Notes: generated by a model from the letters alone, not told the origin. Numbered from the stretch's first letter, positions 31,853 to 53,399 are shown. The stretch is 64,000 nt of DNA from Obrimoposthia wandeli (GCA_977020255.1 CDROCS010000506.1:3410001-3474000), one strand, 5' to 3'. Numbers and translations are program-made.

Positions 31853-32485
31853 TTATTTTGTTACTCTGATTAGTGTACTGCTATCGGTATGCGCCATTGA
31901 TTGACCGTAAATATCTAACATCGTATTTTGTGAATAAGTGAGTTTATTTTCTTCAATTTTGATGTTCATACTAAAGCCTGTTGTTGAGGCTTTTCTTGTC
32001 ATATATGAACCTTCAGCTATCCCTCGTGCTGGTGCAGTCAATGTCATTGTTTTACCTGCAACGCCTTCAGCGGTGACACAAGTAGTACGTGGTATGCAAA
32101 ATGAGTTGTATACCATTTGATTTTTAGCATCATAGATAAAATAACCACGTTGATCATGAAATTTAGATCCATCTGACTTTCTAAATACTTCTTGCTTGTA
32201 ATACAAAGCAACTAAGTATTGTTCGCTTGCATTCTGGGCATCAGCAGCTGCTTCAAACGTCATTGTTTCGAAAAAAGGACTCACTGCAAGAGAGCCTGCA
32301 CCTTGTTCAGATCCGACTTTTGCAGGGGCAACATCAACACCTGCTCCTTCCATTGTTTCCCAAGTTCCAACAAGCTGAGCGAGAGGGCCAAAATCCATCC
32401 CGTTAATGATATTTTCATTCGCAATTGTTGAAAAAGACATTGCTGATGCGAGGCCAAGTACAAGTAATTTTTTCATAAGTATCAT
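31853..32485 (-). CDS. Heme-binding beta-barrel (nitrobindin/FABP-like, DUF1794) protein, exported
   Basis: FGPLAQLVGTWE, GVDVAP, FHDQRGYF and a C-terminal His (AHTD); signal peptide. Confidence 0.7.
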   Translation of the reverse strand: MILMKKLLVLGLASAMSFSTIANENIINGMDFGPLAQLVGTWETMEGAGVDVAPAKVGSEQGAGSLAVSPFFETMTFEAAADAQNASEQYLVALYYKQEVFRKSDGSKFHDQRGYFIYDAKNQMVYNSFCIPRTTCVTAEGVAGKTMTLTAPARGIAEGSYMTRKASTTGFSMNIKIEENKLTYSQNTMLDIYGQSMAHTDSSTLIRVTK

Positions 32486-32717
32486 CCTTAATTAATCCAA
32501 TCGGGTTTATTTTCTGCGCCCAATATAATTCGTTAACTGAGGATCGATGTTGATCTAGGACAAGCTTAATTTATGTTTATTATACTTTATGGGTATTTTT
32601 AAGTTATTGAATTAACTTGATAAGTTTGGCCAATCGGTTTGATTGTTAGAACCTTTTGAAGGTCTTTGTAATGTGATCTTCCTACGAGTAATAGAGCCAT
32701 CTTGTTTTCTAAAACGT

Positions 32718-32793
32718 AAAAAGGCGAGCATGATATGGAATATTTATAAGTAAAAAAATCCACACATGCTCGCCTTTATTAGCTTAAATCGCA
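32718..32793. repeat. Hairpin repeat, copy 1 of 3
   Basis: AAAGGCGAGCAT...ATGCTCGCCTTT-ATTAGCTTAAAT; about 71 of 80 aligned positions match copy 2 by hand alignment. Confidence 0.85.
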
Positions 32794-32801
32794 ACTGCAG
32801 G

Positions 32802-33194
32802 TTAAGACTCGACAGCGCCGCCACTTTCAACCCATTCCGCAAAACCGCCCGCTAGATTTTTAACTGGTGTTAGCCCCATATCTGCAGCTGTTTTCGCAGC
32901 ATAAAGTGAACGCAGGCCGCGAGCACAATAAAACACATAGGTTTTGTCTTGGTTAAAAATCTTATTATGGAAAGGACATGCTGAATCGATTAAAAACTCA
33001 AGCATGCCTCTCGGACAGGTAAATGCACCGGGGATCACGCCAAGAGTTTGTCGTTCTTCAGCTTCTCGGACATCGACAAACACATAGTTGTCATCGTTAA
33101 AAAGGGCTTTGGCTTCAGCTATCGATATATCGTCAACGACACGATAAGCTTCTTCTTCTAAGGCTTTAATACCTTTGGTGATAGTTTGTGGCAT
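32802..33194 (-). CDS. Single-domain rhodanese (sulfurtransferase)
   Basis: VDVRE, GVIPGA, PRGMLEF, active loop YCARGLRS and LAGGFAEW. Confidence 0.9.
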   Translation of the reverse strand: MPQTITKGIKALEEEAYRVVDDISIAEAKALFNDDNYVFVDVREAEERQTLGVIPGAFTCPRGMLEFLIDSACPFHNKIFNQDKTYVFYCARGLRSLYAAKTAADMGLTPVKNLAGGFAEWVESGGAVES

Positions 33195-33260
33195 AGAATA
33201 TTCCTCATTTATAAATTCGGTTATGTTTTAATATATGTCGTTATAGAACAGAGCTTAGCG

Positions 33261-34439
33261 TTATGCCTGTTCTATATCTATTGCTGATTTCAACAACGTG
33301 AGCGAAGCCTGAATTTGCGCTAACGGTGATGCAAAGTTCATGCGATAGAAGTTTTCATCGGGCTCACTAAACCAAGTACCTGGGGTAAGCGCCAATTTTG
33401 CTTGCTGTGTTAATAGCGATTTAAGTTGCGCGGACGTTAAGCCTAATCCGCTAAAATCAAACCAGATCTGATTCGTGCCTTCAGGTACAAACACTTTCAC
33501 TTGTGGCAGTTCATTGGCCATAAATTCGGTGATCCAATTACGGGTATTTTGGGTATAACTTAAAAACGCATCGAACCATGCTTGGCCGTGCTGATAAGCT
33601 GCAATAGTCGCGTTCGTGGTAAAGATATTTTCGTGGTCAAGTGACATAGAAACCACAGTGCTTTTGATCTTCTCGCGTAATACTTTGTTGTCACTGTAAA
33701 TATAACCATTCGAAATACTGTTCAAGCCAAAGCTCTTAGCTGGCGAACCAATAATCGTTAAACTGTTGTCATAATCGAATGAACTAATACTGGTGAATGT
33801 AGCATCGTCAAACACGATGTCGCCATGGATCTCGTCACTAATGATGAGGGTGTTATATTTCTTCGCTATTGCCACCAGTTGTTCTAATTCTGTTTTGTGC
33901 CAAACACGACCGACAGGGTTGTGTGGGTTACATAGCAACACCATTTTCACCTTGCCACTTTGCAGTTGTTTTTCAAAGTCGGCAAAATCCATAACATATT
34001 TATCATTGTCGATTTGTAACGTGTTGTTCACCGCTTTACGTCCTGCCGATTCAATTAAGCGGCGGAATTGATGATAGACCGGTGTTTGAATTAACACGCC
34101 ATCACCTTCATCGGTAAACTCGCGGATTAATAAGGCTATCGCGCTTAATACACCTGGTGCTGGCACAAAGTGGTCGGGATTCAGGTCAAGATTGTGACGG
34201 GCTTTATTCCATTGTGAAATAGCCTGGAACACCGTTTTAGAATCGAATTCGTATGAGTAAGTTTCGCGGCTAACCAGCTGTTGCATGGCTTGAGTTATCG
34301 GTGAGGCGATGGGGAAGTCCATGTCTGCAATCCAATAAGGGGTTACATCATCGGTGCCATAGACTTGCTTAAGCATATTACTGTCGTGCTTGATGAACTT
34401 GTTGTTAATGTCAGTCTGACTTGGTGTTAGTTTCAACAT
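33261..34439 (-). CDS. MalY/PatB family PLP C-S lyase (cystathionine/cystine beta-lyase)
   Basis: PYWIADMDF, LCNPHNPVGRVW, ISDEIHGD, SPAKSFGL and RMNFA. Start placed at ATG 34439. Confidence 0.9.
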   Translation of the reverse strand: MLKLTPSQTDINNKFIKHDSNMLKQVYGTDDVTPYWIADMDFPIASPITQAMQQLVSRETYSYEFDSKTVFQAISQWNKARHNLDLNPDHFVPAPGVLSAIALLIREFTDEGDGVLIQTPVYHQFRRLIESAGRKAVNNTLQIDNDKYVMDFADFEKQLQSGKVKMVLLCNPHNPVGRVWHKTELEQLVAIAKKYNTLIISDEIHGDIVFDDATFTSISSFDYDNSLTIIGSPAKSFGLNSISNGYIYSDNKVLREKIKSTVVSMSLDHENIFTTNATIAAYQHGQAWFDAFLSYTQNTRNWITEFMANELPQVKVFVPEGTNQIWFDFSGLGLTSAQLKSLLTQQAKLALTPGTWFSEPDENFYRMNFASPLAQIQASLTLLKSAIDIEQA

Positions 34440-34475
34440 GGATTTATTTCCGCCATTGTTATTTGATATAACGAT

Positions 34476-34501
34476 GACGGAATTAAATAAAAAAAGACGC
34501 A
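34476..34501 (-). promoter_or_regulatory. Putative ECF (SigZ) promoter of patB-rhodanese
   Basis: Minus strand TGCGTC-N16-CGTC (TGCGTCTTT...CGTCAT). Confidence 0.65.
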
Positions 34502-34607
34502 AATTATTGTATTACTTCATTCGCTTTTAAACATTCACCCGTGATGTCTATTGGTTCCCATCGCAACGGTAGTCGTTGCAGCATCACGTTGCAGCAAGCA
34601 TTAATGG

Positions 34608-35159
34608 CTATGCATTACCCTTACATTTAGGTGAACTGTTGGGGTTTTTTCGTGAATAGTCGATGATACCGTTTTGATCTACTTCAATATCACAGCATGC
34701 CATCATTTGTTCGCGAAATTTGACTCTGCCTCTTTGTACACGGCTCTTGGCACCAGACAGCGATAAACCCAGTTGTTGGGCTATGTCTTTTTGTGAAACC
34801 CCTTCAAGCTCTGCTAAGCGCAGTGGGATGCCATATTTTTCTGGTAGCTCGTCAATCAAGGGGCGTAAACATTCCGCTAATTCTTCACGGGCTTCAATGC
34901 CTTCATCTTCTTCTTCGGCTACGAGATCGTCGGGTAATACTTCATAAGGTTGACGCTCTCGATAAAAGTCCATGATGGTATTGTGCGCAATCCGGTAAAG
35001 CCACCCTTTGAGGCTACCGCTTGATTTTAATTGATGCAAATTACTACTGGCCTTGATGTAAACATCTTGCAGAATATCATCGACAGCGTTTGCATCATCA
35101 ATGCGCTTGCTTACATAACCGCGCAGTTGCGCTTTGTGATTTTGCCATTCAGATAACAT
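34608..35159 (-). CDS. sigZ: ECF RNA polymerase sigma factor, SigZ type
   Basis: DDILQDVYIK, WLYRIAHNTIMDFYR, region 4 SQKDIA...LSLSGAKSRVQRGR and C-terminal CC (MMACCD). Confidence 0.88.
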   Translation of the reverse strand: MLSEWQNHKAQLRGYVSKRIDDANAVDDILQDVYIKASSNLHQLKSSGSLKGWLYRIAHNTIMDFYRERQPYEVLPDDLVAEEEDEGIEAREELAECLRPLIDELPEKYGIPLRLAELEGVSQKDIAQQLGLSLSGAKSRVQRGRVKFREQMMACCDIEVDQNGIIDYSRKNPNSSPKCKGNA

Positions 35160-35230
35160 ATTAATTGAGCCTTAATTTAATCGATTTTACGGTACCAATA
35201 GACAGGATACATGAAGCACCAAAAGACATG

Positions 35231-35256
35231 GACGGTGTAAATCATCAAAAGATGCA
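35231..35256 (-). promoter_or_regulatory. Putative autoregulatory ECF promoter of sigZ
   Basis: Minus strand TGCATC-N16-CGTC. Confidence 0.7.
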
Positions 35257-35301
35257 AAAAAATCACTACTTTTTTATATTTATTTTTAATCACCACAATT
35301 G

Positions 35302-35327
35302 TGCATCTTTTTTTATCCCAATACGTC
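35302..35327 (+). promoter_or_regulatory. Putative ECF promoter of tcyP-cdr
   Basis: TGCATC-N16-CGTC(TT). Confidence 0.7.
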
Positions 35328-35464
35328 TTCTCAGCAGACCTTCAAAGGAATTCGCCTCGCATTAATTGGCGTAATCAGAGAAGAAAATATTAAGTAGTCA
35401 TGAGGCGTTAGCGTAGGGCTTGCTGCATGAATACTGGAATTAACTACAAGTATTGGGGTTTACC

Positions 35465-36889
35465 ATGAGTTTACTATTAATTGCATTAATCGCCATATTT
35501 ATGAGCTTTTATGTTTTGTTATCTCGCTTGAAATCAAGTAAGAAAAGTTTTAATTACCGCGTGCTCACAGCGTTATTCGGTGGCCTGCTATTTGGTGGGG
35601 CGATACAGCTTACAGTGGGTGTTAACAGTGATGTAAATCTGCAATTTGCTGAGCTTATTTCAATTTTTGGTAGTGGCTATGTCAAGTTATTACAAATGAT
35701 TGTTATCCCATTGGTACTTGTTGCCATGACAGCCTCCATCATGAATGTAGAAGGTGATGGCGCATTATCAAAAATAGCACCCAAAATCATCGGCACACTC
35801 ATCTTTACCGTCGTTATTTCTGCGTTGGTTGGTATTGCGAGTATTTATGTGTTTGATATCGATGCCAGCAGCCTAGTCAATGTGATGGGCAGTAACAGTG
35901 CAATAGAGGCGCGTAACAGTACCTTACACTCAACGCAGCATCTGGTGGCAAACAACAGCATAAGCAATCTTTTATTATCAGTCATCCCTGCGAATGTTTT
36001 TGAAATGCTAACCGGATCAGAAAGAACTGCAACCTTGTCTACCGTGTTATTCGGTATGTTTTTGGGCTTTAGTATTCTGCAGGTTAAAAAACGTAAACCT
36101 GAGAAGGTGCAGAGTTTTGTTGATTTCATTAATGCAGCAAAAGAAGTGGTGTTATCAATGGTTCGCGAGATCCTTAAGCTCACACCTTATGGCGTATTTG
36201 CGCTGATGACAAAATTCATGATGAGCAGCGACCTTTTTGCCTTGGCTGAAATGGGACGTTTCTTGATCGCAAGTTATACCGCTATCGGCGTCATGTTCTT
36301 GGTTCATCTGGTATTAGTTGCACTGTTTGGCTTATCTGCGAAAAAATTCGCACAAAAAATCTGGCCTGTTTTAGTGTTTGGTTTTGGCTCGCGTTCAAGC
36401 ATGGCTGCAATTCCACTGAATATAGAAACGCAAACGCAGCGATTGGGCGTTGATGAAGAAACTGCCAACATGTCAGCGACGTTTGGTACCAGCATTGGTC
36501 AAAATGGATGTGCAGGCATCTACCCTGCAATGCTCGCTATTATGGCCGCACAAGTGATGGGTATTCCTGTTGATTTTGGCTTTGTCTTACAGCTTGTCTT
36601 TGTTATCGCCATTGCCTCATTTGGTATTGCGGGTGTCGGCGGCGGTGCAACATTCGCTGCGGTTGCAGTGCTTACCATTATGGGTTTAGACATCACGGTA
36701 GTGGCTATTTTAGTCTCTGTTGAAGCCTTAATCGATATGGCGAGAACAGCACTTAATATCTCAGGTTCTATGCTGTCTGGTGTCATCACTGCTAAGCGTA
36801 ATGGTTCGCTGAATACTGAGTTGTACGCTTCGTCAGAAACGCTTGCTGACCGCGAACGTCATCATTCAACTAACGAAATCAACGCTTAA
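35465..36889 (+). CDS. tcyP: L-cystine:cation symporter (TcyP/YdjN, DAACS family)
   Basis: GYVKLLQMIVIPLV, RSSMAAIPLNIETQ, GQNGCAGIYPAML, GVGGGATFAA and IDMARTALN. Confidence 0.85.
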   Translation: MSLLLIALIAIFMSFYVLLSRLKSSKKSFNYRVLTALFGGLLFGGAIQLTVGVNSDVNLQFAELISIFGSGYVKLLQMIVIPLVLVAMTASIMNVEGDGALSKIAPKIIGTLIFTVVISALVGIASIYVFDIDASSLVNVMGSNSAIEARNSTLHSTQHLVANNSISNLLLSVIPANVFEMLTGSERTATLSTVLFGMFLGFSILQVKKRKPEKVQSFVDFINAAKEVVLSMVREILKLTPYGVFALMTKFMMSSDLFALAEMGRFLIASYTAIGVMFLVHLVLVALFGLSAKKFAQKIWPVLVFGFGSRSSMAAIPLNIETQTQRLGVDEETANMSATFGTSIGQNGCAGIYPAMLAIMAAQVMGIPVDFGFVLQLVFVIAIASFGIAGVGGGATFAAVAVLTIMGLDITVVAILVSVEALIDMARTALNISGSMLSGVITAKRNGSLNTELYASSETLADRERHHSTNEINA

Positions 36890-36926
36890 CAGTCTTGAAC
36901 AAACACTTTATACGAGAATAAACATA

Positions 36927-38324
36927 ATGAAAATTGTAATTTTAGGTGGTAGCGCAGCGGGCATGAGCTTTGCTGCCAAATACAAAAGAAACCAACCAGA
37001 AAATGAAGTTATCGTAATAGAAAAACGCAGCTACCTTTCATTTGGCGCGTGTGGTTTGCCGTATTTTGTTGGCAATCAATTCGATGATACCGAGAGAATG
37101 ATCTCTCGGACACCAGCTCAAGCGATGGATGCGGGGATCGATGTTCGTATCAATACAGAAGTTGTTGCTGTCGACCATATCGCTCAATTGGTTACGATGA
37201 AAGGTGCCAATGGACAAGAGCAACTCCATTACGATAAATTAATTATCGCAACGGGGGCTCGTCCGATTGTGCCCGATTTTAACGACTATTCGGCGGCTAA
37301 TAATAAAGAAACATACAACCCTGAGCATGTTTATACGCTAACAAGCATGGAAGATGGTATCGCCGTCAAACAAGCTTTACAGCATCAAGACAAAAAGAAG
37401 GTTGCCATTATTGGCGCTGGCTTTATTGGTTTGGAAATGTTCGATGCCGCGTATGACTTAGGCAAAGCAGTAACACTGATTGAGCGTGAACCACATATAA
37501 TGAGTCGGCAATTCAGCCCTGAAATGATTGATGTGGTAGAAGATGCTATTCGAGACACCGGCACTGCGTTAATGACGGGGACAGAGGTTAAGTACATTCG
37601 CGATAATGGGCGTGGCGGTTATCTGATCTCAACCCGTACTTTATCAACGAATAGCCCCTCAACAAGCACTCCCTCGGAACAACAAAGTGCTGATGTGGAG
37701 GCCGATATCATCATTTTATCATTAGGCTTTAGACCGAATACAGAACTGTTTGATTTGCCCAAACTCAGTAACGGTGCACTGCTCGTTGATCAGTTTGGGG
37801 CGACACCGATGGCCAATATTTATGCTGTAGGCGATTGCGCCACCGTTCACCATCTTATCTTAAATGAACCGGTATATTTGCCGCTCGCGACGACGGCGAA
37901 TAAGCAAGCACGTATGATGGCTGACAAACTAGCAGGCAAGGAAGTGTTTTTAAATGGCTTCTTAGGGGCGGCATCGTTAAAAGTATTGGACTTTGAACTG
38001 GCGAGTACAGGCGTTTCACAATCGCTTGCCGAGGAATATAAGATCCCAGCTACCACATCAGTGATCAATGATAAAAACCAAACTGATTATTATCCAGGGC
38101 AGGAAGATATTAAGATTAAGTTGGTTTATCACCCTGAATCTAAGGTTTTGTTGGGGGGAGAGATAATCGGTAAAAAAGGCGCGATAGGGCGACTTAATGC
38201 GCTCAGTGTCGCGATGACCGCTAAGATGACCACCAACCAATTAGGGTACTTGGACTTTAGCTATGCGCCACCCTTTGCGAGAACATGGGATGCGTTAAAT
38301 GTTGCGGGTAATGTAGCGAGGTAG
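36927..38324 (+). CDS. CoA-disulfide reductase / NADH oxidase-peroxidase family flavoprotein
   Basis: GGSAAG, single redox Cys in SFGACGLPY, ATGARP, GAGFIGLE, YAVGDCA and DFSYAPPF. Confidence 0.88.
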   Translation: MKIVILGGSAAGMSFAAKYKRNQPENEVIVIEKRSYLSFGACGLPYFVGNQFDDTERMISRTPAQAMDAGIDVRINTEVVAVDHIAQLVTMKGANGQEQLHYDKLIIATGARPIVPDFNDYSAANNKETYNPEHVYTLTSMEDGIAVKQALQHQDKKKVAIIGAGFIGLEMFDAAYDLGKAVTLIEREPHIMSRQFSPEMIDVVEDAIRDTGTALMTGTEVKYIRDNGRGGYLISTRTLSTNSPSTSTPSEQQSADVEADIIILSLGFRPNTELFDLPKLSNGALLVDQFGATPMANIYAVGDCATVHHLILNEPVYLPLATTANKQARMMADKLAGKEVFLNGFLGAASLKVLDFELASTGVSQSLAEEYKIPATTSVINDKNQTDYYPGQEDIKIKLVYHPESKVLLGGEIIGKKGAIGRLNALSVAMTAKMTTNQLGYLDFSYAPPFARTWDALNVAGNVAR

Positions 38325-38371
38325 CCGAAACCATTAATCATGTACGTTATCGTTAATTTTTTGTATTTTTT

Positions 38372-38396
38372 TGCATCTTTTCTGATTTTTTCCGTC
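38372..38396 (+). promoter_or_regulatory. Putative ECF promoter of the gshA-ABC operon
   Basis: TGCATC-N15-CGTC(TT). Confidence 0.65.
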
Positions 38397-38424
38397 TTCA
38401 TTATTAAAGCCGTTTAAGTGAAGT

Positions 38425-40038
38425 GTGAAAATGATAAATACTGAAATAAAATACTCTGAAATTGATGTGGTTTCTTTCTTGAGTAAAGACAATGTTAAAG
38501 CCTCTCTGGTTGATATCCGCCGTGGTATCGAAAGAGAGCTAGTCCGTACAACACCACAAGGTTCGCTTTCTGCATCGCCGCATCCTAAAGCGTTTGGATC
38601 TGCTTTGACGCATCCGAGTATCACAACGGACTTCGCCGAAGCGCAATTAGAATTGGTTACACCTGCAATGAATGACAGGCAGGCTATGTTTAAAACGCTG
38701 GGTAATTTACATCATTTTGTTGCGACTCATATGCCAGCGAATGAAACCCTGTGGGGAGCGAGCATGCCGCCAGTGCTACCAGATGAAAGCATGATCACGA
38801 TTGCTGACTACGGTAGCTCAAATGCAGGTCAGCTGAAAATGCGTTATCGCCATGGTTTGGCGAACCGTTACGGCAAGAATATGCAGTTAATTTCTGGTAT
38901 TCATTACAATTTTTCGCTTCCTGAATCGTTTTGGAAAGCGTTGCACAGCTATACACAAAACCCCGTAGAGCTAAGTGAATTTATCTCGGAGCGTTACTTT
39001 CACCTCATTCGTAATGTGAGCCGTCATGGTTGGGTGATCCCGTACTTGTTTGGTGCCTCACCTGCCGTCGATCACAGCTACAACCCCGTAAATGAGCATA
39101 AGCTCGATAAGCACGATGATAAAACCCATTACCTGCCTTGGGCGACTTCATTACGCCTGAGTAATATGGGATACAGTAACAGTGAGCAGTCGTCGCATCC
39201 GGTGAGTTTTAACAGCAAATTGGCATTTTTAACCGACCTGCACCAAGCACTGACAAAGCCAAGTGAGCGCTACAAACACCTTAATACTGAGAAGCAACTT
39301 AACGCTTCTGTCTTGCAACTTGAAAATGAGTTGTACGGTTTAGTGCGCCCAAAAATTGTGAGTGAGGAACAGCGTCCTTTAATGGCAATGTGTCATCACG
39401 GTGTGCAATACATCGAGCTGCGTAGCCTAGATAATAATCCTTATTTACCACTGGGGATCAGTGAAGAGCAAAGTCATTTTTTGGATATCTTCCTAACTTA
39501 CTGTGCGCTGGCACCAAGTGCTGACATTACCGATGAAGAACAAGTTTTAATTGCTCGCAGGCAGGAATTGGTTGCTACTCAAGGACGTAAACCGGGCTTA
39601 ATGCTACCCACTTTACAAGGAGAACGCTCCTTAGTGGCACTTGGCGAGGAACTGTTAGCGGCGATGAATCCGGTTGCGAATATGTTTGACAGTGCCTTTG
39701 CTACGGATGTTTACGCCAAGGGCGTTGCGCAAGAAAAAACTAAGTTTAGTAACGCTGATCTGACGCCATCGGCGAAGGTATTGACTGATATGAAAAAATA
39801 TCACCTTAGCCATACGGCTTTTGTGCAACAACTTTCTGATTTGCACATGAAGCAACATGTTGAAAACGCGATTGAGCAAGAAGACATGGATAACTTGATA
39901 ACACTGGCATCGGGATCCTTGCTAGCTCAAGCGGAAATGGAAGCGCAGCAAGAGGTCAGTTTTGACCAATTTATCCAACAGCATAACCGCTTGCAGTGTG
40001 ACGGTGAGCAGCAGAAGGTAACGGTTAATTACTCATGA
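38425..40038 (+). CDS. gshA: Glutamate--cysteine ligase
   Basis: RRGIERE, TTDFAEAQLELVTP, SGIHYNFS, SLRLS, QLENELYGLVRPK and YIELRSLD. Confidence 0.92.
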   Translation: MKMINTEIKYSEIDVVSFLSKDNVKASLVDIRRGIERELVRTTPQGSLSASPHPKAFGSALTHPSITTDFAEAQLELVTPAMNDRQAMFKTLGNLHHFVATHMPANETLWGASMPPVLPDESMITIADYGSSNAGQLKMRYRHGLANRYGKNMQLISGIHYNFSLPESFWKALHSYTQNPVELSEFISERYFHLIRNVSRHGWVIPYLFGASPAVDHSYNPVNEHKLDKHDDKTHYLPWATSLRLSNMGYSNSEQSSHPVSFNSKLAFLTDLHQALTKPSERYKHLNTEKQLNASVLQLENELYGLVRPKIVSEEQRPLMAMCHHGVQYIELRSLDNNPYLPLGISEEQSHFLDIFLTYCALAPSADITDEEQVLIARRQELVATQGRKPGLMLPTLQGERSLVALGEELLAAMNPVANMFDSAFATDVYAKGVAQEKTKFSNADLTPSAKVLTDMKKYHLSHTAFVQQLSDLHMKQHVENAIEQEDMDNLITLASGSLLAQAEMEAQQEVSFDQFIQQHNRLQCDGEQQKVTVNYS

Positions 40039-41813
40039 ATATACTTTGGAAATTACGTGGCTATATAAAAATGTTTGCTCGGCAGTACATTATCGCCATT
40101 TTGGTACTGCAAATCGTCGCCTTGTTAAACCTGTTACCGTCTTGGTTGATAGGTCGGATTGTTGACAGTATTAGTGCTGGGGAATTAACTACGCGTTTAT
40201 TACTTATTCACCTCGCTGGCATTTTACTTTCTGCCCTTGCTATGTATGGCTTGCGGTATGTTTGGCAAAGCAGACTGTATGGTGCATCGGTTGCGATTAC
40301 CAAGGTGATGCGCAGTGAACTGTTTCATAAATTCACCGTACTTTCGCCATCATTCTACTCTCGCCGTAGCCCTGGTGATTTAATGGCGCATGCGACCAAT
40401 GATCTTAATGCGGTAGAAGAAGCAACCGGTATGGGCATCATGACGTTTGTGGACTCTTTGATTGCGGGTTTTACCGTAATTTTGGGCATGATTTTGGTTG
40501 TTAGTGGCGAGCTTACCGCGGTTGCTCTTTTGCCGTTTCCTCTGTTGGTCTACATTACGCATCGATATGGTACCAACCTGCATAAAGCCTTTGGCCGTGC
40601 ACAAACGACCTTTTCAAATTTGAATGAAGAAACTCGAGAAACTGTTTCTGGTATTCGTGCCGTTCACTCGCATGGTATCAATCAACGTCAGGAACAGCGT
40701 TTTGGTAAAGTATTGGACGATACGTTGGATGCAAACTTGTCGGTGGCTAAAGTAGACGCTGCGTTTATTCCAACGATTCAACTGTTTTACGGTTTGTCAT
40801 TTGTTATTTCACTTGGTTATGGTGCTTTGCTGATTAGCCAAGGCAACATTACCGTGGGACTGTTTACAACGTTTACGCTTTATCTTGGTCAGTTGTTGGG
40901 GCCATTTATGCAATTCGGTTGGCAGTTCAATGTATTTCAACGAGGCAGCATCTCATGGCAACGGTTGGAAAGCCTTTTCTCGGAACAACCAGAAGTGTTG
41001 GAAGGGAAAGACACTTTACCTAAGGATGCAAACGCGAATATAGCGATCAATATTAAATCGTTTACGTATCAAGGCGCAAATCGACGTGCGCTACAAGACA
41101 TCAAACTGGATATTCCTGCAGGAGGGTTAATCGGTATCACAGGCCCTACTGGCGGCGGTAAAAGTACCTTGTTGCAACTGGTATTAAGGCAATTCCAATT
41201 GGACTCGCAATCAAGTATTCGTATTGATGGGCATTCGATTGACAGCCTGACCTTTGATTCGATGCGTAGCAAAATGGCATGGGTACCGCAAAAGCCATTT
41301 TTGTTTTCTGGCACTATCGCGGAAAACATCGCATTAGGTAAACCGAATGCTTCAGCGGATGAGATTGCTCATGTTGCTGAAATGGCGGGCATCACAGATG
41401 AAATTGAAGCCATGCCTGAGGGATTCAATACTGTACTGAGAGAGGGCGGAACCAATCTTTCTGGCGGTCAGAGACAGCGACTTACTCTCGCCAGAGCTTT
41501 ACTGTCTGACGCTGACATTCTGCTGCTCGATGATCCGTTCAGTGCACTAGACATGAAAACGGAAGTGATTGTGCGCCGGAACCTGAAAAAGCATTATGGA
41601 CATAAAACGATGGTATTGATTACGCAGCGATTACCAAACTTGATCGAAGCAGACCAAATTCTGGTGTTGAACGAAGGCCAGATTGAAGAACGAGGATCAC
41701 ACCATGATTTAGTCGCAAAGCAAGGCTGGTACTCGTTGGTTTATCAACGTCAAAGTCAGCTGGGTAAAGCAATCAAAGAGAAAGCAACACTTACAGGAGA
41801 ACACTATGCGTGA
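40035..41813 (+). CDS. Type IV ABC exporter half-transporter A (MdlA/SmdA-like)
   Basis: TM domain, GDLMAHATND, Walker A GPTGGGKS, LSGGQRQR and degenerate Walker B LLDD; start overlaps the gshA stop. Confidence 0.9.
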   Translation: MNILWKLRGYIKMFARQYIIAILVLQIVALLNLLPSWLIGRIVDSISAGELTTRLLLIHLAGILLSALAMYGLRYVWQSRLYGASVAITKVMRSELFHKFTVLSPSFYSRRSPGDLMAHATNDLNAVEEATGMGIMTFVDSLIAGFTVILGMILVVSGELTAVALLPFPLLVYITHRYGTNLHKAFGRAQTTFSNLNEETRETVSGIRAVHSHGINQRQEQRFGKVLDDTLDANLSVAKVDAAFIPTIQLFYGLSFVISLGYGALLISQGNITVGLFTTFTLYLGQLLGPFMQFGWQFNVFQRGSISWQRLESLFSEQPEVLEGKDTLPKDANANIAINIKSFTYQGANRRALQDIKLDIPAGGLIGITGPTGGGKSTLLQLVLRQFQLDSQSSIRIDGHSIDSLTFDSMRSKMAWVPQKPFLFSGTIAENIALGKPNASADEIAHVAEMAGITDEIEAMPEGFNTVLREGGTNLSGGQRQRLTLARALLSDADILLLDDPFSALDMKTEVIVRRNLKKHYGHKTMVLITQRLPNLIEADQILVLNEGQIEERGSHHDLVAKQGWYSLVYQRQSQLGKAIKEKATLTGEHYA

Positions 41814-43623
41814 TGCAAAAATGAATCAAGCGAGTGACGCTTCTTTGTTTCGTCGCCTTATGGCTTACTCATTACCACATAAAATGCGTTTTGTGGGGGC
41901 ATTTATGATGCTTGCCATTGCGATCAGTGCTGAGATGGCGATCCCTTGGATCGCTAAGATTATTATTGACGAGGTGATTATACCTCAGCAGTTTGAATGG
42001 CCGTACTTAGCGTCGCTGCTTGGGTTGATCATCTTCGCCTATGTGATCTCTGGATTGTTTAACTATTTGCAGACGGTGTCGTTTAGTCATAGCGCTTTGT
42101 TAATGGTCAATGATGTTCGAAAACAGTTGTTTAATCACGTATTGAACTTTCCTATCAGTGTATTTGATAAACTCGCTGCGGGTAATTTGGTGTCTTACAT
42201 TACTAATGACACCGAAGCTTTACGCAACATGTTTGTGTCGACGATCCCAACCATTATGCAGGGCAGTTTACGTATTGGTGCGATTTTTATCGCTATCTCG
42301 TTATTGGACTGGCGTTTGATGTTGTTGAGTCTGGTGTTGATCCCAATACTGTTGCTGACAATGCATGCTTATCGCAAGATCTCGATGAAAGTGTTTGATG
42401 GCATCCGTGTGCAAATTAGTAACATCAACGGCCAGATTAACGAGTCTTTACAAGGCATGGTATTGATTCAGGCGTTTCGCCAAGAAAAAGCGTTCACTGA
42501 AAAATTTGAGCAAGAGAACAAGCGTTGGTTTGATTTCCGCGAGAAGTCGATTGCAATTGACAGCCTGATGTTGAACCCGTTAACGCGTTTGGTATCGACG
42601 CTTACTGCTGCGGCTATCGTTGGATGGTTTGCTGGTGAATCACTTAGTGTTGTCGTTGAAGTCGGTACTTTGTATGCGTTTTTAAATTATATCGAACGCT
42701 TCTTTGACCCGTTCCGCCAGTTGTCTATGGAACTGCGTAAATTGCAGGTAGCAACCGTGGCATCGAAACGCATTTTTGAGTTATTGGACGATGACTCGGC
42801 ACATCAGTCGCCATCAATGAACATTGTGCCGCTATCAACGCAGCATGATATTGAGTTTCGCAACGTCAACTTTAGCTACGAAGAAGGTAAACAGGTACTG
42901 TCTAATGTGAGCTTTACCGCGAAGGGCGGGCAATCTACAGCGATTGTGGGTCATTCTGGTAGTGGTAAAAGTTCAGTGGTTAACTTATTGATGCGCTTTT
43001 ATCAGCATCAGCAAGGTGAGATATTGGTAGCTGGTCAGCCGATAGGATCACTCCCTGAGGCTCAACTTCGCAAGCTGTTTGGTTTGGTTTCACAAGATCC
43101 AATTATATTCAGCGGTTCGGTGTTGGATAATATTGATTTATCACATGCAATACCAAACAAAGATAAAGCCATACTCGCGGCAAAGCAGGTGAAAGCGCAC
43201 AAGTTTATTGAGCGCTTAACTAATGGTTATGAACATCAGCTTAGTCATGGCGGCGCTTCACTTTCGGTTGGTGAAAAACAGCAATTGGCATTGGCGAGAG
43301 CGATCACTCATGATCCGAGTATTTTCTTACTGGATGAAGCCACTGCTAACATAGACAGTGATACCGAAGAGGCGGTTAAAGAGGCGCTCGAGGGCATCCA
43401 AGATGGCAGAACCGTCATCACGGTTGCGCATCGTTTATCGACTATTCAGAATGCAGATCAAATTCTGGTGATGAATAAAGGCAAAATCGTGCAAAGCGGG
43501 ACGCATGACGAGTTGATCGGCCAAGATGGCGATTATCGTGACTTGTATCTTGCACAAAAAACGCAAGAAGAGAACGAACATCAGAACAGTCTGCTTGGTT
43601 TAGCGCAAGCAACCGCAGCCTAG
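41806..43623 (+). CDS. Type IV ABC exporter half-transporter B (MdlB/SmdB-like)
   Basis: Walker A GHSGSGKS, LSVGEKQ, LLDEATANID and AHRLST. Confidence 0.9.
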   Translation: MRDAKMNQASDASLFRRLMAYSLPHKMRFVGAFMMLAIAISAEMAIPWIAKIIIDEVIIPQQFEWPYLASLLGLIIFAYVISGLFNYLQTVSFSHSALLMVNDVRKQLFNHVLNFPISVFDKLAAGNLVSYITNDTEALRNMFVSTIPTIMQGSLRIGAIFIAISLLDWRLMLLSLVLIPILLLTMHAYRKISMKVFDGIRVQISNINGQINESLQGMVLIQAFRQEKAFTEKFEQENKRWFDFREKSIAIDSLMLNPLTRLVSTLTAAAIVGWFAGESLSVVVEVGTLYAFLNYIERFFDPFRQLSMELRKLQVATVASKRIFELLDDDSAHQSPSMNIVPLSTQHDIEFRNVNFSYEEGKQVLSNVSFTAKGGQSTAIVGHSGSGKSSVVNLLMRFYQHQQGEILVAGQPIGSLPEAQLRKLFGLVSQDPIIFSGSVLDNIDLSHAIPNKDKAILAAKQVKAHKFIERLTNGYEHQLSHGGASLSVGEKQQLALARAITHDPSIFLLDEATANIDSDTEEAVKEALEGIQDGRTVITVAHRLSTIQNADQILVMNKGKIVQSGTHDELIGQDGDYRDLYLAQKTQEENEHQNSLLGLAQATAA

Positions 43624-43725
43624 GCCTCATATGTGGGTAATGCGGCAATCGCACCATAACGAAAAAGCCAAAGTGGAAGACCACTTTGGCGATGCTAAAT
43701 TTATTCGATTATTGTTTTTTGAACA

Positions 43726-45195
43726 TCAGTTGATTAATGTTAGAGAGTCGAGAACGCCTTTACCACTGTGAATGCCGCCTTCATTTTCACTGGCTGGCTT
43801 GCTGCGAATAAGGTAACCGGCATAACCATCGAGTTCTGTAACTGGAACGCCATCGTAATAAGCGGTAAACAAACCGATTTCGCTAACAAGGTCATCGACC
43901 TGTACTTGTGCGTTATCGCGGACCGTTATCGCTGGTACCTCGCGTTCATGCGGGTACAAACGTGACATTAACGCCCATGCGTCATATTCTTCTGGGTTGA
44001 GTTCATTCAATTTATCGCTGATGTCCTCACCAAAAACGCAGTGACCACCACCTTCACCTTGATTCTTTAATACCCACTCTTGTTTATCAGCTTGGGTGTT
44101 AAACCAGGTTATCGTTTCTGGGTTTATAGGCTTCATATCTGCTAACACACTTTTTACCAATTCAGCTTCTACTAGGTTAAGTCCCCAGCGAGCATACTCT
44201 TCGGCAGGCATTACTGTCAGTAGCATCTGCATGGTTTTACTTGTTGCAAGCTGCTGGCTGAACGTAGCATTAACTGCAACATGATGCTGCTCGATAAACA
44301 ATCTTGTTTGACTTAATGTCTGGCAACATACCGGTTCATCTCGCGCTGGAGAGTAGTAATCAGAATACTGATAACCTGCTCGTAGGTACACGACATCGAT
44401 AGCTCCAATGTCTGCTAACATTAAGCGCTGGTTGTCACCAGTTGATAGCTGTGTACTAAGCTGCTCAAACGTACGTCGTACTGTGCGTATACCTTTATGC
44501 TGTAACGCGACTTCAAGTAAATGTTGGTCATAAACATTATCTTCATTTTCTTGGACAACCATCAAGAATGTCGGTTTTGGTTGGGTTGCATCGGTTGTAA
44601 ACGCCGCTTGGACTTTTATCGCTGCTTGGGCAATACCATAGGCGAGCTGTTCCAGTCCTTGATTCTCTGCTGGTGTCGATAAGTTATCTTCAGACCATTC
44701 ACGGTAAACGTTTGGCCATTGATTTTTCATATAAGCGTGAAATTCTGTCGCGCGTTGGCCAAAGGGCGCCATACCGGCAGCAATACCGTTGAACTCAATA
44801 ACTTTGGCACCGTGTTGACGGTCATCCATAAAGTCGGTGCGCATTAACAGTAACGGTTTTCGAGCGGGTGTAAGCCGATGTTCACTATTACCATGAGCCT
44901 GTTGGTGCAGAGATAATAAACGACCGAAAAACGGGTCGGCTTTGGCCATATCTTGTAATGACGATTGTAGAAAATCATGATCTTCCGAGACATTGTTTAT
45001 CAGCTTAGTAATAAGTGGCGTCACTTTGCGTAAATGTTGGAACACTTTACGCTCCATCATCATTGGCGCAATACTAAAAGGGCAGTGTCTGGCGGTGTTA
45101 TCTGCTTGACGAAACGCGACACCATGCATAATGGCCCATTCAGTTGCATCTTGAATCACTTGTTGTGGGATCATTAAGGTTGTTTTGGTATTCAT
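43726..45195 (-). CDS. Glutathione synthetase of the eukaryotic (GSS/GSH2) type
   Basis: RTDFM, IEFN, YLRAGY, VLKNQGEGGG, SEIGLF, GYLIRSK and EGGIHSGKGVLDS parallel eukaryotic GSS motifs. Start placed at ATG 45195 after GGAG. Confidence 0.82.
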   Translation of the reverse strand: MNTKTTLMIPQQVIQDATEWAIMHGVAFRQADNTARHCPFSIAPMMMERKVFQHLRKVTPLITKLINNVSEDHDFLQSSLQDMAKADPFFGRLLSLHQQAHGNSEHRLTPARKPLLLMRTDFMDDRQHGAKVIEFNGIAAGMAPFGQRATEFHAYMKNQWPNVYREWSEDNLSTPAENQGLEQLAYGIAQAAIKVQAAFTTDATQPKPTFLMVVQENEDNVYDQHLLEVALQHKGIRTVRRTFEQLSTQLSTGDNQRLMLADIGAIDVVYLRAGYQYSDYYSPARDEPVCCQTLSQTRLFIEQHHVAVNATFSQQLATSKTMQMLLTVMPAEEYARWGLNLVEAELVKSVLADMKPINPETITWFNTQADKQEWVLKNQGEGGGHCVFGEDISDKLNELNPEEYDAWALMSRLYPHEREVPAITVRDNAQVQVDDLVSEIGLFTAYYDGVPVTELDGYAGYLIRSKPASENEGGIHSGKGVLDSLTLIN

Positions 45196-45282: not shown

Positions 45283-45308
45283 GACGAAAAAATGTTAGGA
45301 AAGATGCA
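45283..45308 (-). promoter_or_regulatory. Putative ECF promoter of the glutathione synthetase gene
   Basis: Minus strand TGCATC-N16-CGTC(TT). Confidence 0.7.
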
Positions 45309-46592: not shown

Positions 46593-46634
46593 TTTACGCT
46601 CAGATTCAAAAAGTTTACGCTCAGATGCAAAAAG
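46593..46634. repeat. Two tandem 21-bp units TTTACGCTCAGAT(T/G)CAAAAAG
   Basis: 46593-46613 and 46614-46634 differ at one base. Confidence 0.9.
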
Positions 46635-46720
46635 GCGAGCATGATAATGGATCATTTATAATTAAATAAATCCACATCAATGCTCGCCTTTGTTAGCTTA
46701 AATACGCAGTTCTAGACCTG
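46629..46720. repeat. Hairpin repeat copy 2 plus a truncated copy of the guaC terminator
   Basis: 46683-46720 is identical over 38 bp to 51756-51793. Confidence 0.9.
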
Positions 46721-51729: not shown

Positions 51730-51793
51730 AAAGGCGAGGCAATAATTAAATTGTTCTCGCCTTTGTTAGCTTAAATACGCAGTTCTAGACCTG
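51730..51793. repeat. Hairpin repeat copy 3 (short-loop variant)
   Basis: AAAGGCGAG...CTCGCCTTT-GTTAGCTTAAATACGCAGTTCTAGACCTG. Confidence 0.85.
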
Positions 51794-51800
51794 CGTATTT
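51773..51800 (-). terminator. guaC intrinsic terminator
   Basis: AAATACGCAG-N8-CTGCGTATTT, a perfect 10-bp stem 8 nt after the stop. Confidence 0.8.
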
Positions 51801-51808
51801 ACACCAAT

Positions 51809-52849
51809 TTATTCTTTACCGAATACGTTGTTTTCTTGCTCAAGTACACGGATAAAGGTAGTACGCTTGCTTAGCTCTTTTAATGAAGCTGCGCCAACGT
51901 ATGTACAAGTAGAACGTACGCCACCTAGGATATCAAAAACAGTGTTTTCGATTGGACCACGGTAAGGAACTTCTACAGTTTTGCCTTCTGAAGCACGGTA
52001 TTTAGCAACACCACCTGCGTGTTTGTTCATCGCAGTTGTTGAGCTCATGCCATAGAATTTTTTCGTTTTCTTGCCATTAACTTCGCACAGCTCGCCGCCA
52101 CTTTCGTCGTGACCAGCTAACATACCGCCAAGCATAACGAAGTCTGCGCCGCCGCCAAATGCTTTAGCAACATCACCAGCACAAGAACAACCACCGTCAC
52201 CAACAACCATGCCTGAAAGGCCGTGAGCAGCGTCAGCACACTCGATGATTGCAGAAAGTTGTGGGTAACCAACACCTGTTTTAACACGTGTAGTACATAC
52301 TGAACCAGGACCGATACCAACTTTGATGATATCTGCACCAGAAAGAATAAGTTCTTCTGTGATTTCACCAGTAACTACGTTACCAGCCATAATCGTTTTA
52401 GTTGGGTATGCTTTACGTACTTTACGCACGAAATCAATGAAAAATTCTGAGTAACCATTAGCTACATCGATACAGATAAACTGTAAACGCTCATCTAATG
52501 CTAGAACTTGTTGAAGTTTTTCGAAATCTGAATCTGATGTACCAGTTGATACAAAGATGTGGTCAAAGATTTCTTGGTTTGCTTCTAGGAACTCTTTCCA
52601 TTCAGCTACAGTGTAATGCTTATGTACAGCTGTTAGCATTTTGTGTTCAGCAAGTTCTTTCGCTGCTTCAAATGTGCCTACAGTATCCATGTTTGCAGCA
52701 ATAACCGGTACACCTGTCCAAGTGTACTTGCTGTTAGGGAAAGTGAATGTACGCTCTAAGCTTACTTGTGAACGACTCTTAAGAGTTGAACGTTTTGGGC
52801 GGAAAAGTACATCTTTAAAACCTAGCTTCAATTCTTGTTCTATGCGCAT
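51809..52849 (-). CDS. guaC: GMP reductase
   Basis: [54 protein letters not shown] and RASEGK. Confidence 0.97.
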
Positions 52850-53399
52850 GACATCTATCTTCTGTTTGTTTGCACAGGCTCTTATTCTTGGCCGCAATAT
52901 ATAGCAGGCGCAAGGAAAACCCTAAATGAATGGGTTCATGGATGGTACTGTGCAAAAAATTATAAGGATTTTAGTTTAAGCGGTACAAGCGAATCGTGTG
53001 TGCGGGTAAGCCGCGTTTATCCAACGCGCTTATACGGACTGATATTAGTCTAAGGGTCGTTATCTTGTAAAGGCTTTATTTTCATGTGAAGGAGCGATAA
53101 AGGTCATTTCTTGACTTGAAAGTCAGTATTTATGCGGCTCTAGGAGGGATAAATAAAGTTTAAAATAATTGTAACGAGCAAGGGGCAGCATCGGGATGAA
53201 TTCTGAACCGTAAAGATGTTTATAGCTGGCAAGGGCAAGTTAAAAAAGAGAAAGGTAAAAGGCAAAGCTAAAAAAGACCAAGCCCCACAGTATTGAATGC
53301 GAACTGTGAGTGCTTGGCCAAGGGTTTTATTATAAATGACGAACAGGAACCAACTAGCCGCGACAGGCTAGGCTCGTCATTGTTTTACTGGTTACGCTT

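Follow-up and report, generated by a model that had tools for sequence, protein, structure and literature searches.

The 64,000 nucleotides analysed here, which we call the window, carry the name Obrimoposthia wandeli (GCA_977020255.1 CDROCS010000506.1:3410001-3474000), and their host is a Moritella-like marine gammaproteobacterium. At positions 32802-45195 the window holds nine genes in five transcription units, and we are confident that these genes form a compact regulon of the extracytoplasmic function (ECF) sigma factor SigZ. The genes encode SigZ itself, a TcyP-like cystine symporter, a PatB-family C-S lyase, a rhodanese, a single-Cys flavoprotein disulfide reductase of the coenzyme A disulfide reductase type (CoADR), the glutamate-cysteine ligase GshA, a eukaryotic-type glutathione-synthetase-family ligase (gss) and two ATP-binding cassette (ABC) half-transporters (abcA, abcB). 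The first-pass annotation of this DNA had named these families and had placed the genes under one sigma factor. Pfam and NCBIfam profile searches back all nine assignments, the open reading frames (ORFs) lie where they had been placed, and five near-identical promoters, one at the head of each unit, bear out the common control. On what the module does, we propose that a thiol-reactive signal would elicit cysteine supply, tripeptide synthesis and export. We regard the case for this model as a whole as evenly balanced; its trigger, product and exported substrate are what we infer.

The promoters are the strongest argument for a single regulon. The pattern TGCRTCTTT-N12/13-CGTC heads all five units, i.e., sigZ, patB-rhodanese, tcyP-coadr, gshA-abcA-abcB and gss. 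When relaxed to TGCRTC-N15-17-CGTC, it occurs five times in the 64 kb, always within the module and once per transcription unit, whereas block shuffles gave a mean of 0.33 occurrences and a maximum of 3. A weight matrix was derived from 99 sites at related loci, among which the spacing is identical in 96; in the window, only the same five sites reach at least 14 bits, and they score between 23.5 and 34. Because one of the sites stands ahead of sigZ itself, autoregulation is implied. Furthermore, almost all of the 40 SigZ loci examined for it, across phyla, carry the family promoter consensus TTTGCGTCTTTTT...CCGTCTT, mostly either some 70 nt ahead of sigZ or immediately behind it. An equivalent site about 70 nt upstream of sigZ is present at L001, L002, L006, L008, L010, L011, L013, L014, L020 and L021 (L numbers are our handles for the loci compared), and SigZ-type motifs are also found ahead of tcyP (L029) and of gshA (L003, L004, L005, L007, L016, L029, L097).

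With respect to the layout, the rhodanese, PatB and SigZ genes lie on the minus strand, and the symporter, CoADR, GshA and the two ABC genes run divergently from sigZ on the plus strand. The gss gene is again on the minus strand, convergent with the plus-strand genes. Its start is likely the ATG at 45195, which has GGAGAG ahead of it. For patB the ATG at 34439 is the likely start, as the listed alternative, a TTG at 34502, overlaps with the promoter. The features are collected in Table 1.

Table 1. Genes, predicted promoters and other elements of the SigZ module and its surroundings (positions within the window; for profile matches, the score is followed by the cut-off where one applies)
Feature	Position	Strand	Details
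THAP4-like haem-binding beta-barrel (nitrobindin-type) gene	31853-32485		Flanks the module
Hairpin-containing repeat, left copy	32709-32789		Direct-repeat families D2 and D3; bounds the block with the module
Single-domain rhodanese	32802-33194	-	PF00581, 2.7e-17; second gene of the patB unit
PatB-family pyridoxal phosphate (PLP)-dependent C-S lyase	33261-34439	-	TIGR04350, 342.8 bits, cut-off 340 (marginal)
Predicted SigZ-type promoter of patB-rhodanese	34476-34501	-	TGCGTCTTTTTTTATTTAATTCCGTC; 34.0 bits
ECF sigma factor SigZ (ECF238)	34608-35159	-	NF007215, 244.1, cut-off 212; TIGR02959, 229.9, cut-off 168.65
Predicted SigZ-type promoter of sigZ	35231-35256	-	TGCATCTTTTGATGATTTACACCGTC; 23.5 bits
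Predicted SigZ-type promoter of tcyP-coadr	35302-35327	+	TGCATCTTTTTTTATCCCAATACGTC; 26.1 bits; divergent from the sigZ promoter
TcyP-like cystine/sulfocysteine:cation symporter (SDF)	35465-36889	+	PF00375, 6.7e-86
CoADR/CoA-persulfide-reductase-type single-Cys flavoprotein disulfide reductase	36927-38324	+	NF007123, 589.7, cut-off 458
Predicted SigZ-type promoter of gshA-abcA-abcB	38372-38396	+	TGCATCTTTTCTGATTTTTTCCGTC; 32.9 bits; spacer 1 base shorter
Glutamate-cysteine ligase GshA (E. coli type)	38431-40038	+	PF04262, 8.3e-141; TIGR01434, 489.3, cut-off 393.3
ABC half-transporter A, degenerate ATPase site	40035-41813	+	ABC_membrane and ABC_tran
ABC half-transporter B, consensus ATPase site	41806-43623	+	ABC_membrane and ABC_tran
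Hairpin terminator between convergent abcB and gss	43667-43690		10-bp stem (6 GC pairs), then a minus-strand T run
Eukaryotic-type glutathione-synthetase-family ligase gss	43726-45195	-	PF03917, 7.5e-60; PF03199, 8.5e-21
Predicted SigZ-type promoter of gss	45283-45308	-	TGCATCTTTCCTAACATTTTTTCGTC; 25.9 bits
guaC	51809-52897

If the genes belong together, they should be found together elsewhere, and had they failed to co-occur, the module proposed by the first-pass annotation would have had to be given up. A genome scan with the sigma factor gave 80 loci, and a metagenome scan added the reductase. Other genera also have window genes together with SigZ, in the form of exchangeable modules: sigZ-gshA-abcA-abcB-gss in Vibrio agarilyticus, Aliivibrio logei, A. 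fischeri and Photobacterium (L003, L004, L007, L016), sigZ-gss-patB in Shewanella, Ferrimonas, Alginatibacterium and Agarivorans (L001, L002, L006, L089), sigZ-gss in Motilimonas, Moritella marina and Vibrio sp. VB16 (L010, L081, L088), and sigZ-patB in several Vibrio, Thalassomonas and Endozoicomonas. All of the genes, in a different order, are present in Gammaproteobacteria bacterium AS21 (L029), and a metagenome contig (L097) shows an array of the AS21 type, its left end stopping before patB and tcyP. The metagenome scan also showed the tcyP-coadr and coadr-rhodanese pairs to be conserved.

In some relatives the module seems to be in decay. In Paraglaciecola arctica (L087:9336-9875) sigZ is broken into two ORFs, and in Aliivibrio finisterrensis (L005:10633-14609) gshA is cut to 117 aa and abcB is apparently missing. 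A different situation is seen in V. crassostreae and the Splendidus clade (L085:8935-11455), where a near-match to the SigZ promoter, TTCGTCTTTTT...CGTCTTA, lies upstream of a eukaryotic-type glutathione synthetase (GS) gene adjacent to a LysR gene.

The sigma factor itself offers hints as to how the regulon might be switched. SigZ consists of the sigma2 and sigma4 domains only (PF04542, PF08281), shares 92% identity with M. marina SigZ; close relatives of it are spread through the marine gammaproteobacteria. There is no anti-sigma ORF beside sigZ: its neighbours are patB and tcyP, and the 300-nt divergent region consists of two promoters and no ORF. The window protein has cysteines at position 97, in the linker between sigma2 and sigma4, at positions 155 and 156, a vicinal pair just after sigma4, and at the C-terminal position 179. 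Conservation among 68 family members is 87% for Cys97, 99% for Cys155-Cys156 and 60-76% for the CxxC-like cysteines at the C-terminus. SigZ has been grouped in ECF238 with Myxococcus xanthus CorE2; members of this group lack an anti-sigma factor and are thought to be switched by metals via a short Cys-rich C-terminal extension, and CorE2 is activated by cadmium and zinc through such a Cys-rich tail (PMC7826278, PMC8999054). Following the CorE/CorE2 design, SigZ may serve as its own sensor, with Cys97, the vicinal pair and the C-terminal cysteine as the residues on which a thiol-reactive signal would act. The likeliest such signal would be a thiophilic metal(loid), e.g., arsenite, and an electrophile or reactive sulfur would be less likely. 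Once active, SigZ would amplify its own expression and raise that of its regulon.

The targets of the wider SigZ family bear on the nature of this signal. The most frequent promoter-driven gene encodes an ArsM-type methyltransferase (31-33 of the 80 loci). The SigZ-linked methyltransferases pass the arsenite-methyltransferase model (372 against a cut-off of 263) and keep all four ArsM cysteine motifs. The set of genes changes with the distance of the sigma factor. Where its identity is at least 58%, gss is a neighbour in 10 of 16 loci and patB in 7 of 16, and gshA is also found in this band. Between 50 and 58%, glutathione S-transferase (GST) is found in 6 of 13 loci, ArsM in 5 and gamma-glutamyltranspeptidase (GGT) in 3, and below 50% ArsM is present in 25 of 51. 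Other recurrent targets or neighbours are Cys-type GSTs, ArsP_1-type permeases, DUF2703 proteins, serine acetyltransferase and GGT. ArsM, Cys-type GSTs and ArsP-like permeases are among the targets of distant SigZ proteins, and the system is thus probably triggered by a thiol-reactive metal(loid) or electrophile rather than by general thiol supply. The first-pass annotation had not named an inducer.

Two groups of these loci deserve a description of their own. In Endozoicomonas, Ferrimonas and Marinobacter (L017-L023, L083:10290-11048, L084:8648-9361), SigZ appears to drive a GST of about 250 aa with a CPF active site and a Cys-rich C-terminal tail, and a GGT or a flavin adenine dinucleotide (FAD) oxidoreductase is often near. 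Two-gene sigZ-arsM units (L024-L078, e.g., L025:10001-11410 and L034:10001-11420) occur in many phyla, including Gamma- and Betaproteobacteria, Nitrospirota, Bacillota, Chloroflexota and Verrucomicrobiota, with a conserved TGCGTCYTTT...CCGTCT promoter placed between the two genes; our literature search gave no paper on this link. Around these units there are no classical ars genes apart from occasional ArsR and ArsP_1. MddH, the H2S/methanethiol methyltransferase, was considered as an identity for the SigZ-linked methyltransferase and set aside, since the published enzyme is of the UbiE family, a comparison made by description only. The MddH paper mentions neither ArsM nor a sigma factor.

These observations allow a more far-reaching formulation, which we put forward as an unlikely one. 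SigZ sigma factors would be one-component sensors of thiophilic metalloids, above all arsenite, which would bind to the linker Cys, the vicinal pair and the tail cysteines, and in most phyla the sensor would be coupled to ArsM. In marine gammaproteobacteria, it would instead be coupled to a eukaryote-like detoxification route not known to be described for bacteria, in which cystine is imported, a glutathione-type tripeptide (possibly a new analogue made by the ligase with the His loop) is inducibly synthesized, and thiol-metalloid conjugates are exported by an asymmetric ABC pump dedicated to them.

The supply side of the proposed route begins with the symporter, which over its full length (470 aligned residues) shows 43% identity and 64% positives with E. 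coli K-12 TcyP (E 2e-107) and may bring in cystine or S-sulfocysteine. The reductase encoded behind it reaches 396.9 against TIGR03385, under the cut-off of 578.8. Its active-site Cys42 lies in SFGACGLPY, and there is one other cysteine, at position 304. The closest solved relatives are the Enterococcus faecalis CoA-persulfide reductase (8a56, 6e-72) and Npsr of Shewanella loihica (3ntd). No rhodanese domain is fused to the window reductase, which ends at residue 465, the rhodanese being a separate gene. The active loop of that rhodanese, CARGLR, has the six residues of the sulfurtransferase type, and an identity as an Acr2/Cdc25-type arsenate reductase was ruled out, the loop being CX4R and not CX5R. 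Orthologues of the rhodanese gene directly follow the CoADR gene at L029, L090 and L095-L097. PatB, in turn, has the PLP-lysine motif SPAKSF. In the model, the reductase together with the stand-alone rhodanese would reduce the disulfide or persulfide, and PatB would cleave Cys-S-X compounds, from which sulfane sulfur would pass to the rhodanese.

The tcyP-coadr pair is kept at L029, L090-L092, L094 and L101 and at the distant L099, a conserved pairing which suggests that imported cystine or its persulfide has a reductase of its own. One metagenome contig (L092:6962-11323) carries an operon of a YheO-like regulator (PAS_6 and HTH_22), RidA, TcyP and the CoADR-type reductase that is placed downstream of a SigZ-type promoter, and sigZ itself is absent from the surrounding 10 kb. 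The operon suggests that TcyP and the reductase form a self-standing cystine-handling pair.

The same genes could be read as a response to reactive sulfur or cystine overload. SigZ cysteines would then be persulfidated or bridged, cystine would be taken up and converted by PatB to cysteine persulfide, the CoADR-type reductase and the rhodanese would reduce persulfides, and glutathione would be exported as a carrier of sulfane sulfur. Handling of reactive sulfur had also been part of the first-pass annotation, and its persulfide component gains support from the conserved coadr-rhodanese and tcyP-coadr pairs and from the reductase's relatives CoA-persulfide reductase and Npsr, each of which is fused to a rhodanese. 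The RidA gene ahead of tcyP-coadr at L092 would be consistent with a beta-lyase that releases aminoacrylate. However, most SigZ loci of the marine clade contain gss and/or patB and neither coadr nor rhodanese, the cluster has no sulfide:quinone oxidoreductase or persulfide dioxygenase, and the ArsM proteins beside distant SigZ keep their four arsenic-binding motifs. We consider this reading distinctly unlikely.

In the synthesis unit, the stop codon of gshA overlaps the start of abcA, such that the exporter is translationally coupled to gshA, and abcA in turn overlaps abcB by 8 nt. AbcA has the Walker B sequence LLDD, which lacks the catalytic Glu, a Gln in place of the H-loop His, and a canonical LSGGQ signature; its best solved relative is the BmrCD chain YheI (1.8e-123). 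AbcB has the Walker B sequence LLDE, an AHR H-loop and a degenerate signature, LSVGE. The pair thus combines one consensus and one degenerate nucleotide site, as in the heterodimeric type-I exporters BmrCD, SmdAB and TM287-288. It does not reach the cut-offs of the SmdA and SmdB models (559.1 against 845, 460 against 746), of the CydD model TIGR02857 (256-271 against 435) or of the CydC model TIGR02868 (221-222 against 329). By these model scores and the closest solved structures, an identity as CydDC or as an Atm1-like transporter was ruled out. We propose that GshA would make gamma-Glu-Cys, that the eukaryotic-type ligase would extend it to a glutathione-type tripeptide, and that the asymmetric AbcAB heterodimer would export the thiol or its metal or electrophile conjugates.

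Another interpretation, along the lines of the first-pass annotation, would be general thiol homeostasis, in which an oxidative or disulfide signal elicits cystine import, glutathione synthesis and the export of free glutathione that buffers the periplasm, much as with CydDC, and no metal(loid) is involved. The gene content fits this idea, Cys-rich sigma and anti-sigma factors are known to sense oxidation (PMC7826278), and the ABC proteins do score sizeably, though under the thresholds, on the CydD and CydC models. Nevertheless, the nearest relatives of the pair are BmrCD and ABCB/ABCC, which export drugs and conjugates, and not CydDC. In the wider family ArsM is the commonest target and Cys-type GSTs and ArsP-like permeases come next, while peroxidases and thioredoxins were not seen there. 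Moreover, the minimal sigZ-gss units would raise glutathione only if gamma-Glu-Cys were in excess. On balance, we find thiol homeostasis an unlikely explanation.

The ligase encoded by gss raises the question of what the tripeptide is. The protein can be aligned to the GS of potato, yeast and human and to the homoglutathione synthetase of soybean, and it keeps the ATP and Mg residues and the G-loop; its motifs KNQGEGGG, RxGY, NxxDQ and RSK match up with those of the three GS proteins. Its specificity loop, on the other hand, reads EGG-IHS-G, as compared to GG-VAA-G in GS and GG-VLP-G in homoglutathione synthetase, and its substrate strand is NGIAAGM in place of NTISxSF. Both the loop change and the strand change are invariant in 120 of 120 bacterial orthologues. 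Down to about 40% identity, the His is characteristic of the bacterial clade; Ala is found there in most other representatives of the family (VAA 41, VAS 14, VAT 11), among which Ser or Thr at the next position is ordinary. In homoglutathione synthetase, changes in the Ala-Ala loop are known to alter the acceptor amino acid. Given the clade-specific His in this loop, the product may not be glutathione, and judging from the protein sequence, glutathione or an analogue of it may be made.

This leads to a further alternative, namely that the ligase makes another gamma-Glu-Cys-X tripeptide or uses an S-substituted dipeptide, and that the operon serves the synthesis and secretion of a specialised extracellular thiol, for instance a metal-binding one. 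The loop and strand changes, where the first loop position is otherwise Ala (or Leu in homoglutathione synthetase) and the strand Ser-Phe has become Gly-Met, speak for it, as do the score of 247.7 against the glutathione synthase equivalog TIGR01986 (cut-off 329.8) and the coupling of the exporter to gshA. In addition, the occurrence of sigZ-gss alone in many genomes would make more sense with such a product than with extra glutathione. Against this, all alignable residues that contact ATP, Mg and gamma-Glu-Cys are kept, canonical enzymes often have Ser as the second loop residue, and NCBI labels these proteins glutathione synthase. A specialised thiol seems to us somewhat unlikely.

Returning to our own proposal of a thiol-reactive signal that elicits thiol synthesis and export, several observations weigh against it. 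The C-terminal tail of SigZ keeps only one cysteine in the marine clade, and at L011 and L012 it has none. Since the sigZ-arsM units come without other ars genes, even they may not be specific for arsenic. The tcyP-coadr pair is also found behind a YheO-like regulator, away from any sigZ, and in V. crassostreae gss adjoins a LysR regulator in a locus that has no sigZ, which means that gss is not strictly dependent on SigZ. The ABC pair, though similar to BmrCD and SmdAB, falls under every equivalog cut-off, including those of CydDC, which makes glutathione or its conjugates no more than candidate substrates; and the ligase, with its sub-cut-off score and loop His, is perhaps not glutathione-making at all.

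With respect to the genomic setting, the module lies within a variable region downstream of guaC. In M. marina, the site downstream of guaC carries sigZ-gss alone. In Moritella sp. Urea-trap-13, a sigZ remnant with an internal deletion stands there ahead of gss, and behind gss come the same two genes, THAP4-like and 292-aa, as flank the block in the window. The Urea-trap-13 remnant (L086:9880-10000) joins N- and C-terminal codons of sigZ, with gss intact and no SigZ-type promoter. In the window, the tcyP-coadr, gshA-abcAB and patB-rhodanese units, each with a matching promoter, look as if they had been added to a resident sigZ-gss core.

Further copies of the D2/D3 repeat, which is about 80 nt long, are located at 46620-46703 and at 51753-51809, where the repeat adjoins the 3′ end of guaC, and its hairpin is also present after guaC in Urea-trap-13. 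The three copies, related to the guaC 3′ end, split the region downstream of guaC into blocks, and between the first two lie the SigZ module, a gene for a cyclic nucleotide (cNMP)-binding protein and a GNAT gene. It could be argued from the repeats on either side of the block, and from related Moritella that carry at this site only sigZ-gss or gss with a decayed sigZ, that the region simply collects mobile DNA and that the genes came together by chance and do not cooperate. We consider this highly improbable, as matching promoters head all five units and nothing else in the window, and the genes recur with SigZ in unrelated contexts and in differing order. A foreign origin was also considered on the basis of GC content, which is 0.43-0.45 in the cluster, 0.41 on average in the window and 0.42 in guaC; this is a weak argument, since GC does not discriminate here.

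The flanking genes (THAP4-like, POT transporter, cNMP-binding protein and GNAT) are unrelated, and none has a SigZ-type promoter. This includes the THAP4-like gene listed in Table 1, a relative of which flanks gss in another Moritella strain. A scan of the window for sigma-70 promoters and terminators gave counts not above those of shuffles, the hairpin between abcB and gss being the sole useful match, and an Rfam scan of the window gave zero RNA families; the long tcyP leader, too, is free of riboswitch matches.

SigZ has been without a known regulon or signal ever since its naming in B. subtilis (PMC7826278), and its promoter and targets can here be read from sequence, across phyla. We found no described counterpart of the gammaproteobacterial SigZ regulon in the literature searched, and no paper that ties SigZ or any ECF sigma factor to glutathione synthesis or to ArsM, in a search that did not cover the ECF-reclassification supplement. 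A. fischeri, which carries a sigZ-gshA-abcAB-gss operon, is genetically tractable. If our proposal is true, SigZ would be a sigma factor that senses a thiol-reactive toxicant by its own cysteines, and the module would be a bacterial equivalent of the way in which eukaryotes couple glutathione synthesis to a conjugate pump. It would also give a role to the glutathione synthetases of the eukaryotic family, which occur widely among marine Vibrio, Shewanella, Colwellia and Moritella and whose product is possibly not glutathione.

How does the module compare to known systems? Its components and CorE-like sigma factors belong to known families, whereas the gene set as one unit is not previously described. 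Like SigZ, CorE and CorE2 of M. xanthus have sigma2 and sigma4 only, no anti-sigma factor, a Cys-rich C-terminal extension and cysteine in the linker, and they belong to ECF238 (the former ECF44). CorE differs in that it has a CxC in the linker and six cysteines in the tail, as compared to the single linker Cys, the vicinal CC and the one tail Cys of the window protein, and its targets are copper efflux and oxidase genes rather than genes of thiol synthesis. The window sigma is linked to B. subtilis SigZ, which is likewise in ECF238, in that it passes the SigZ equivalog models.

For the enzymes, the CoA-persulfide reductase (8a56) and Npsr (3ntd) share with the window reductase the CoADR-type fold, a single active-site Cys in SFxxCGLPY (E 6e-72 to 1.5e-65) and a rhodanese partner. 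In those proteins the rhodanese is fused C-terminally, whereas the rhodanese gene of the window is in another operon (and is the next gene at L029 and L090), and the conserved partner of the window reductase is, unlike theirs, a TcyP-type importer. Soybean homoglutathione synthetase (3kaj) is of the same enzyme family as gss, with Leu-Pro in the loop where gss has His-Ser.

On the export side, E. coli CydDC is, like AbcAB, a heterodimeric ABC exporter tied to low-molecular-weight thiols; the window pair differs in being far under the CydD and CydC cut-offs, in having no cydAB nearby, and in having BmrCD as its closest solved relative. The eukaryotic gamma-glutamylcysteine synthetase (gamma-GCS) and GS, together with ABCC pumps such as yeast Ycf1, human MRP1 and Leishmania MRPA, likewise combine a glutamate-cysteine ligase, a GS of the eukaryotic family and an ABC exporter with one degenerate site, in the module for what would appear to be detoxification by way of thiols. 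These pumps are full-length proteins, whereas the exporter of the window is a heterodimer of the BmrCD/SmdAB type and all of its partners are co-regulated by one sigma factor. A classical bacterial ars operon works differently, and by analogy, the nearest functional counterpart of the SigZ module is the eukaryotic gamma-GCS combined with an MRP/Ycf1 pump.

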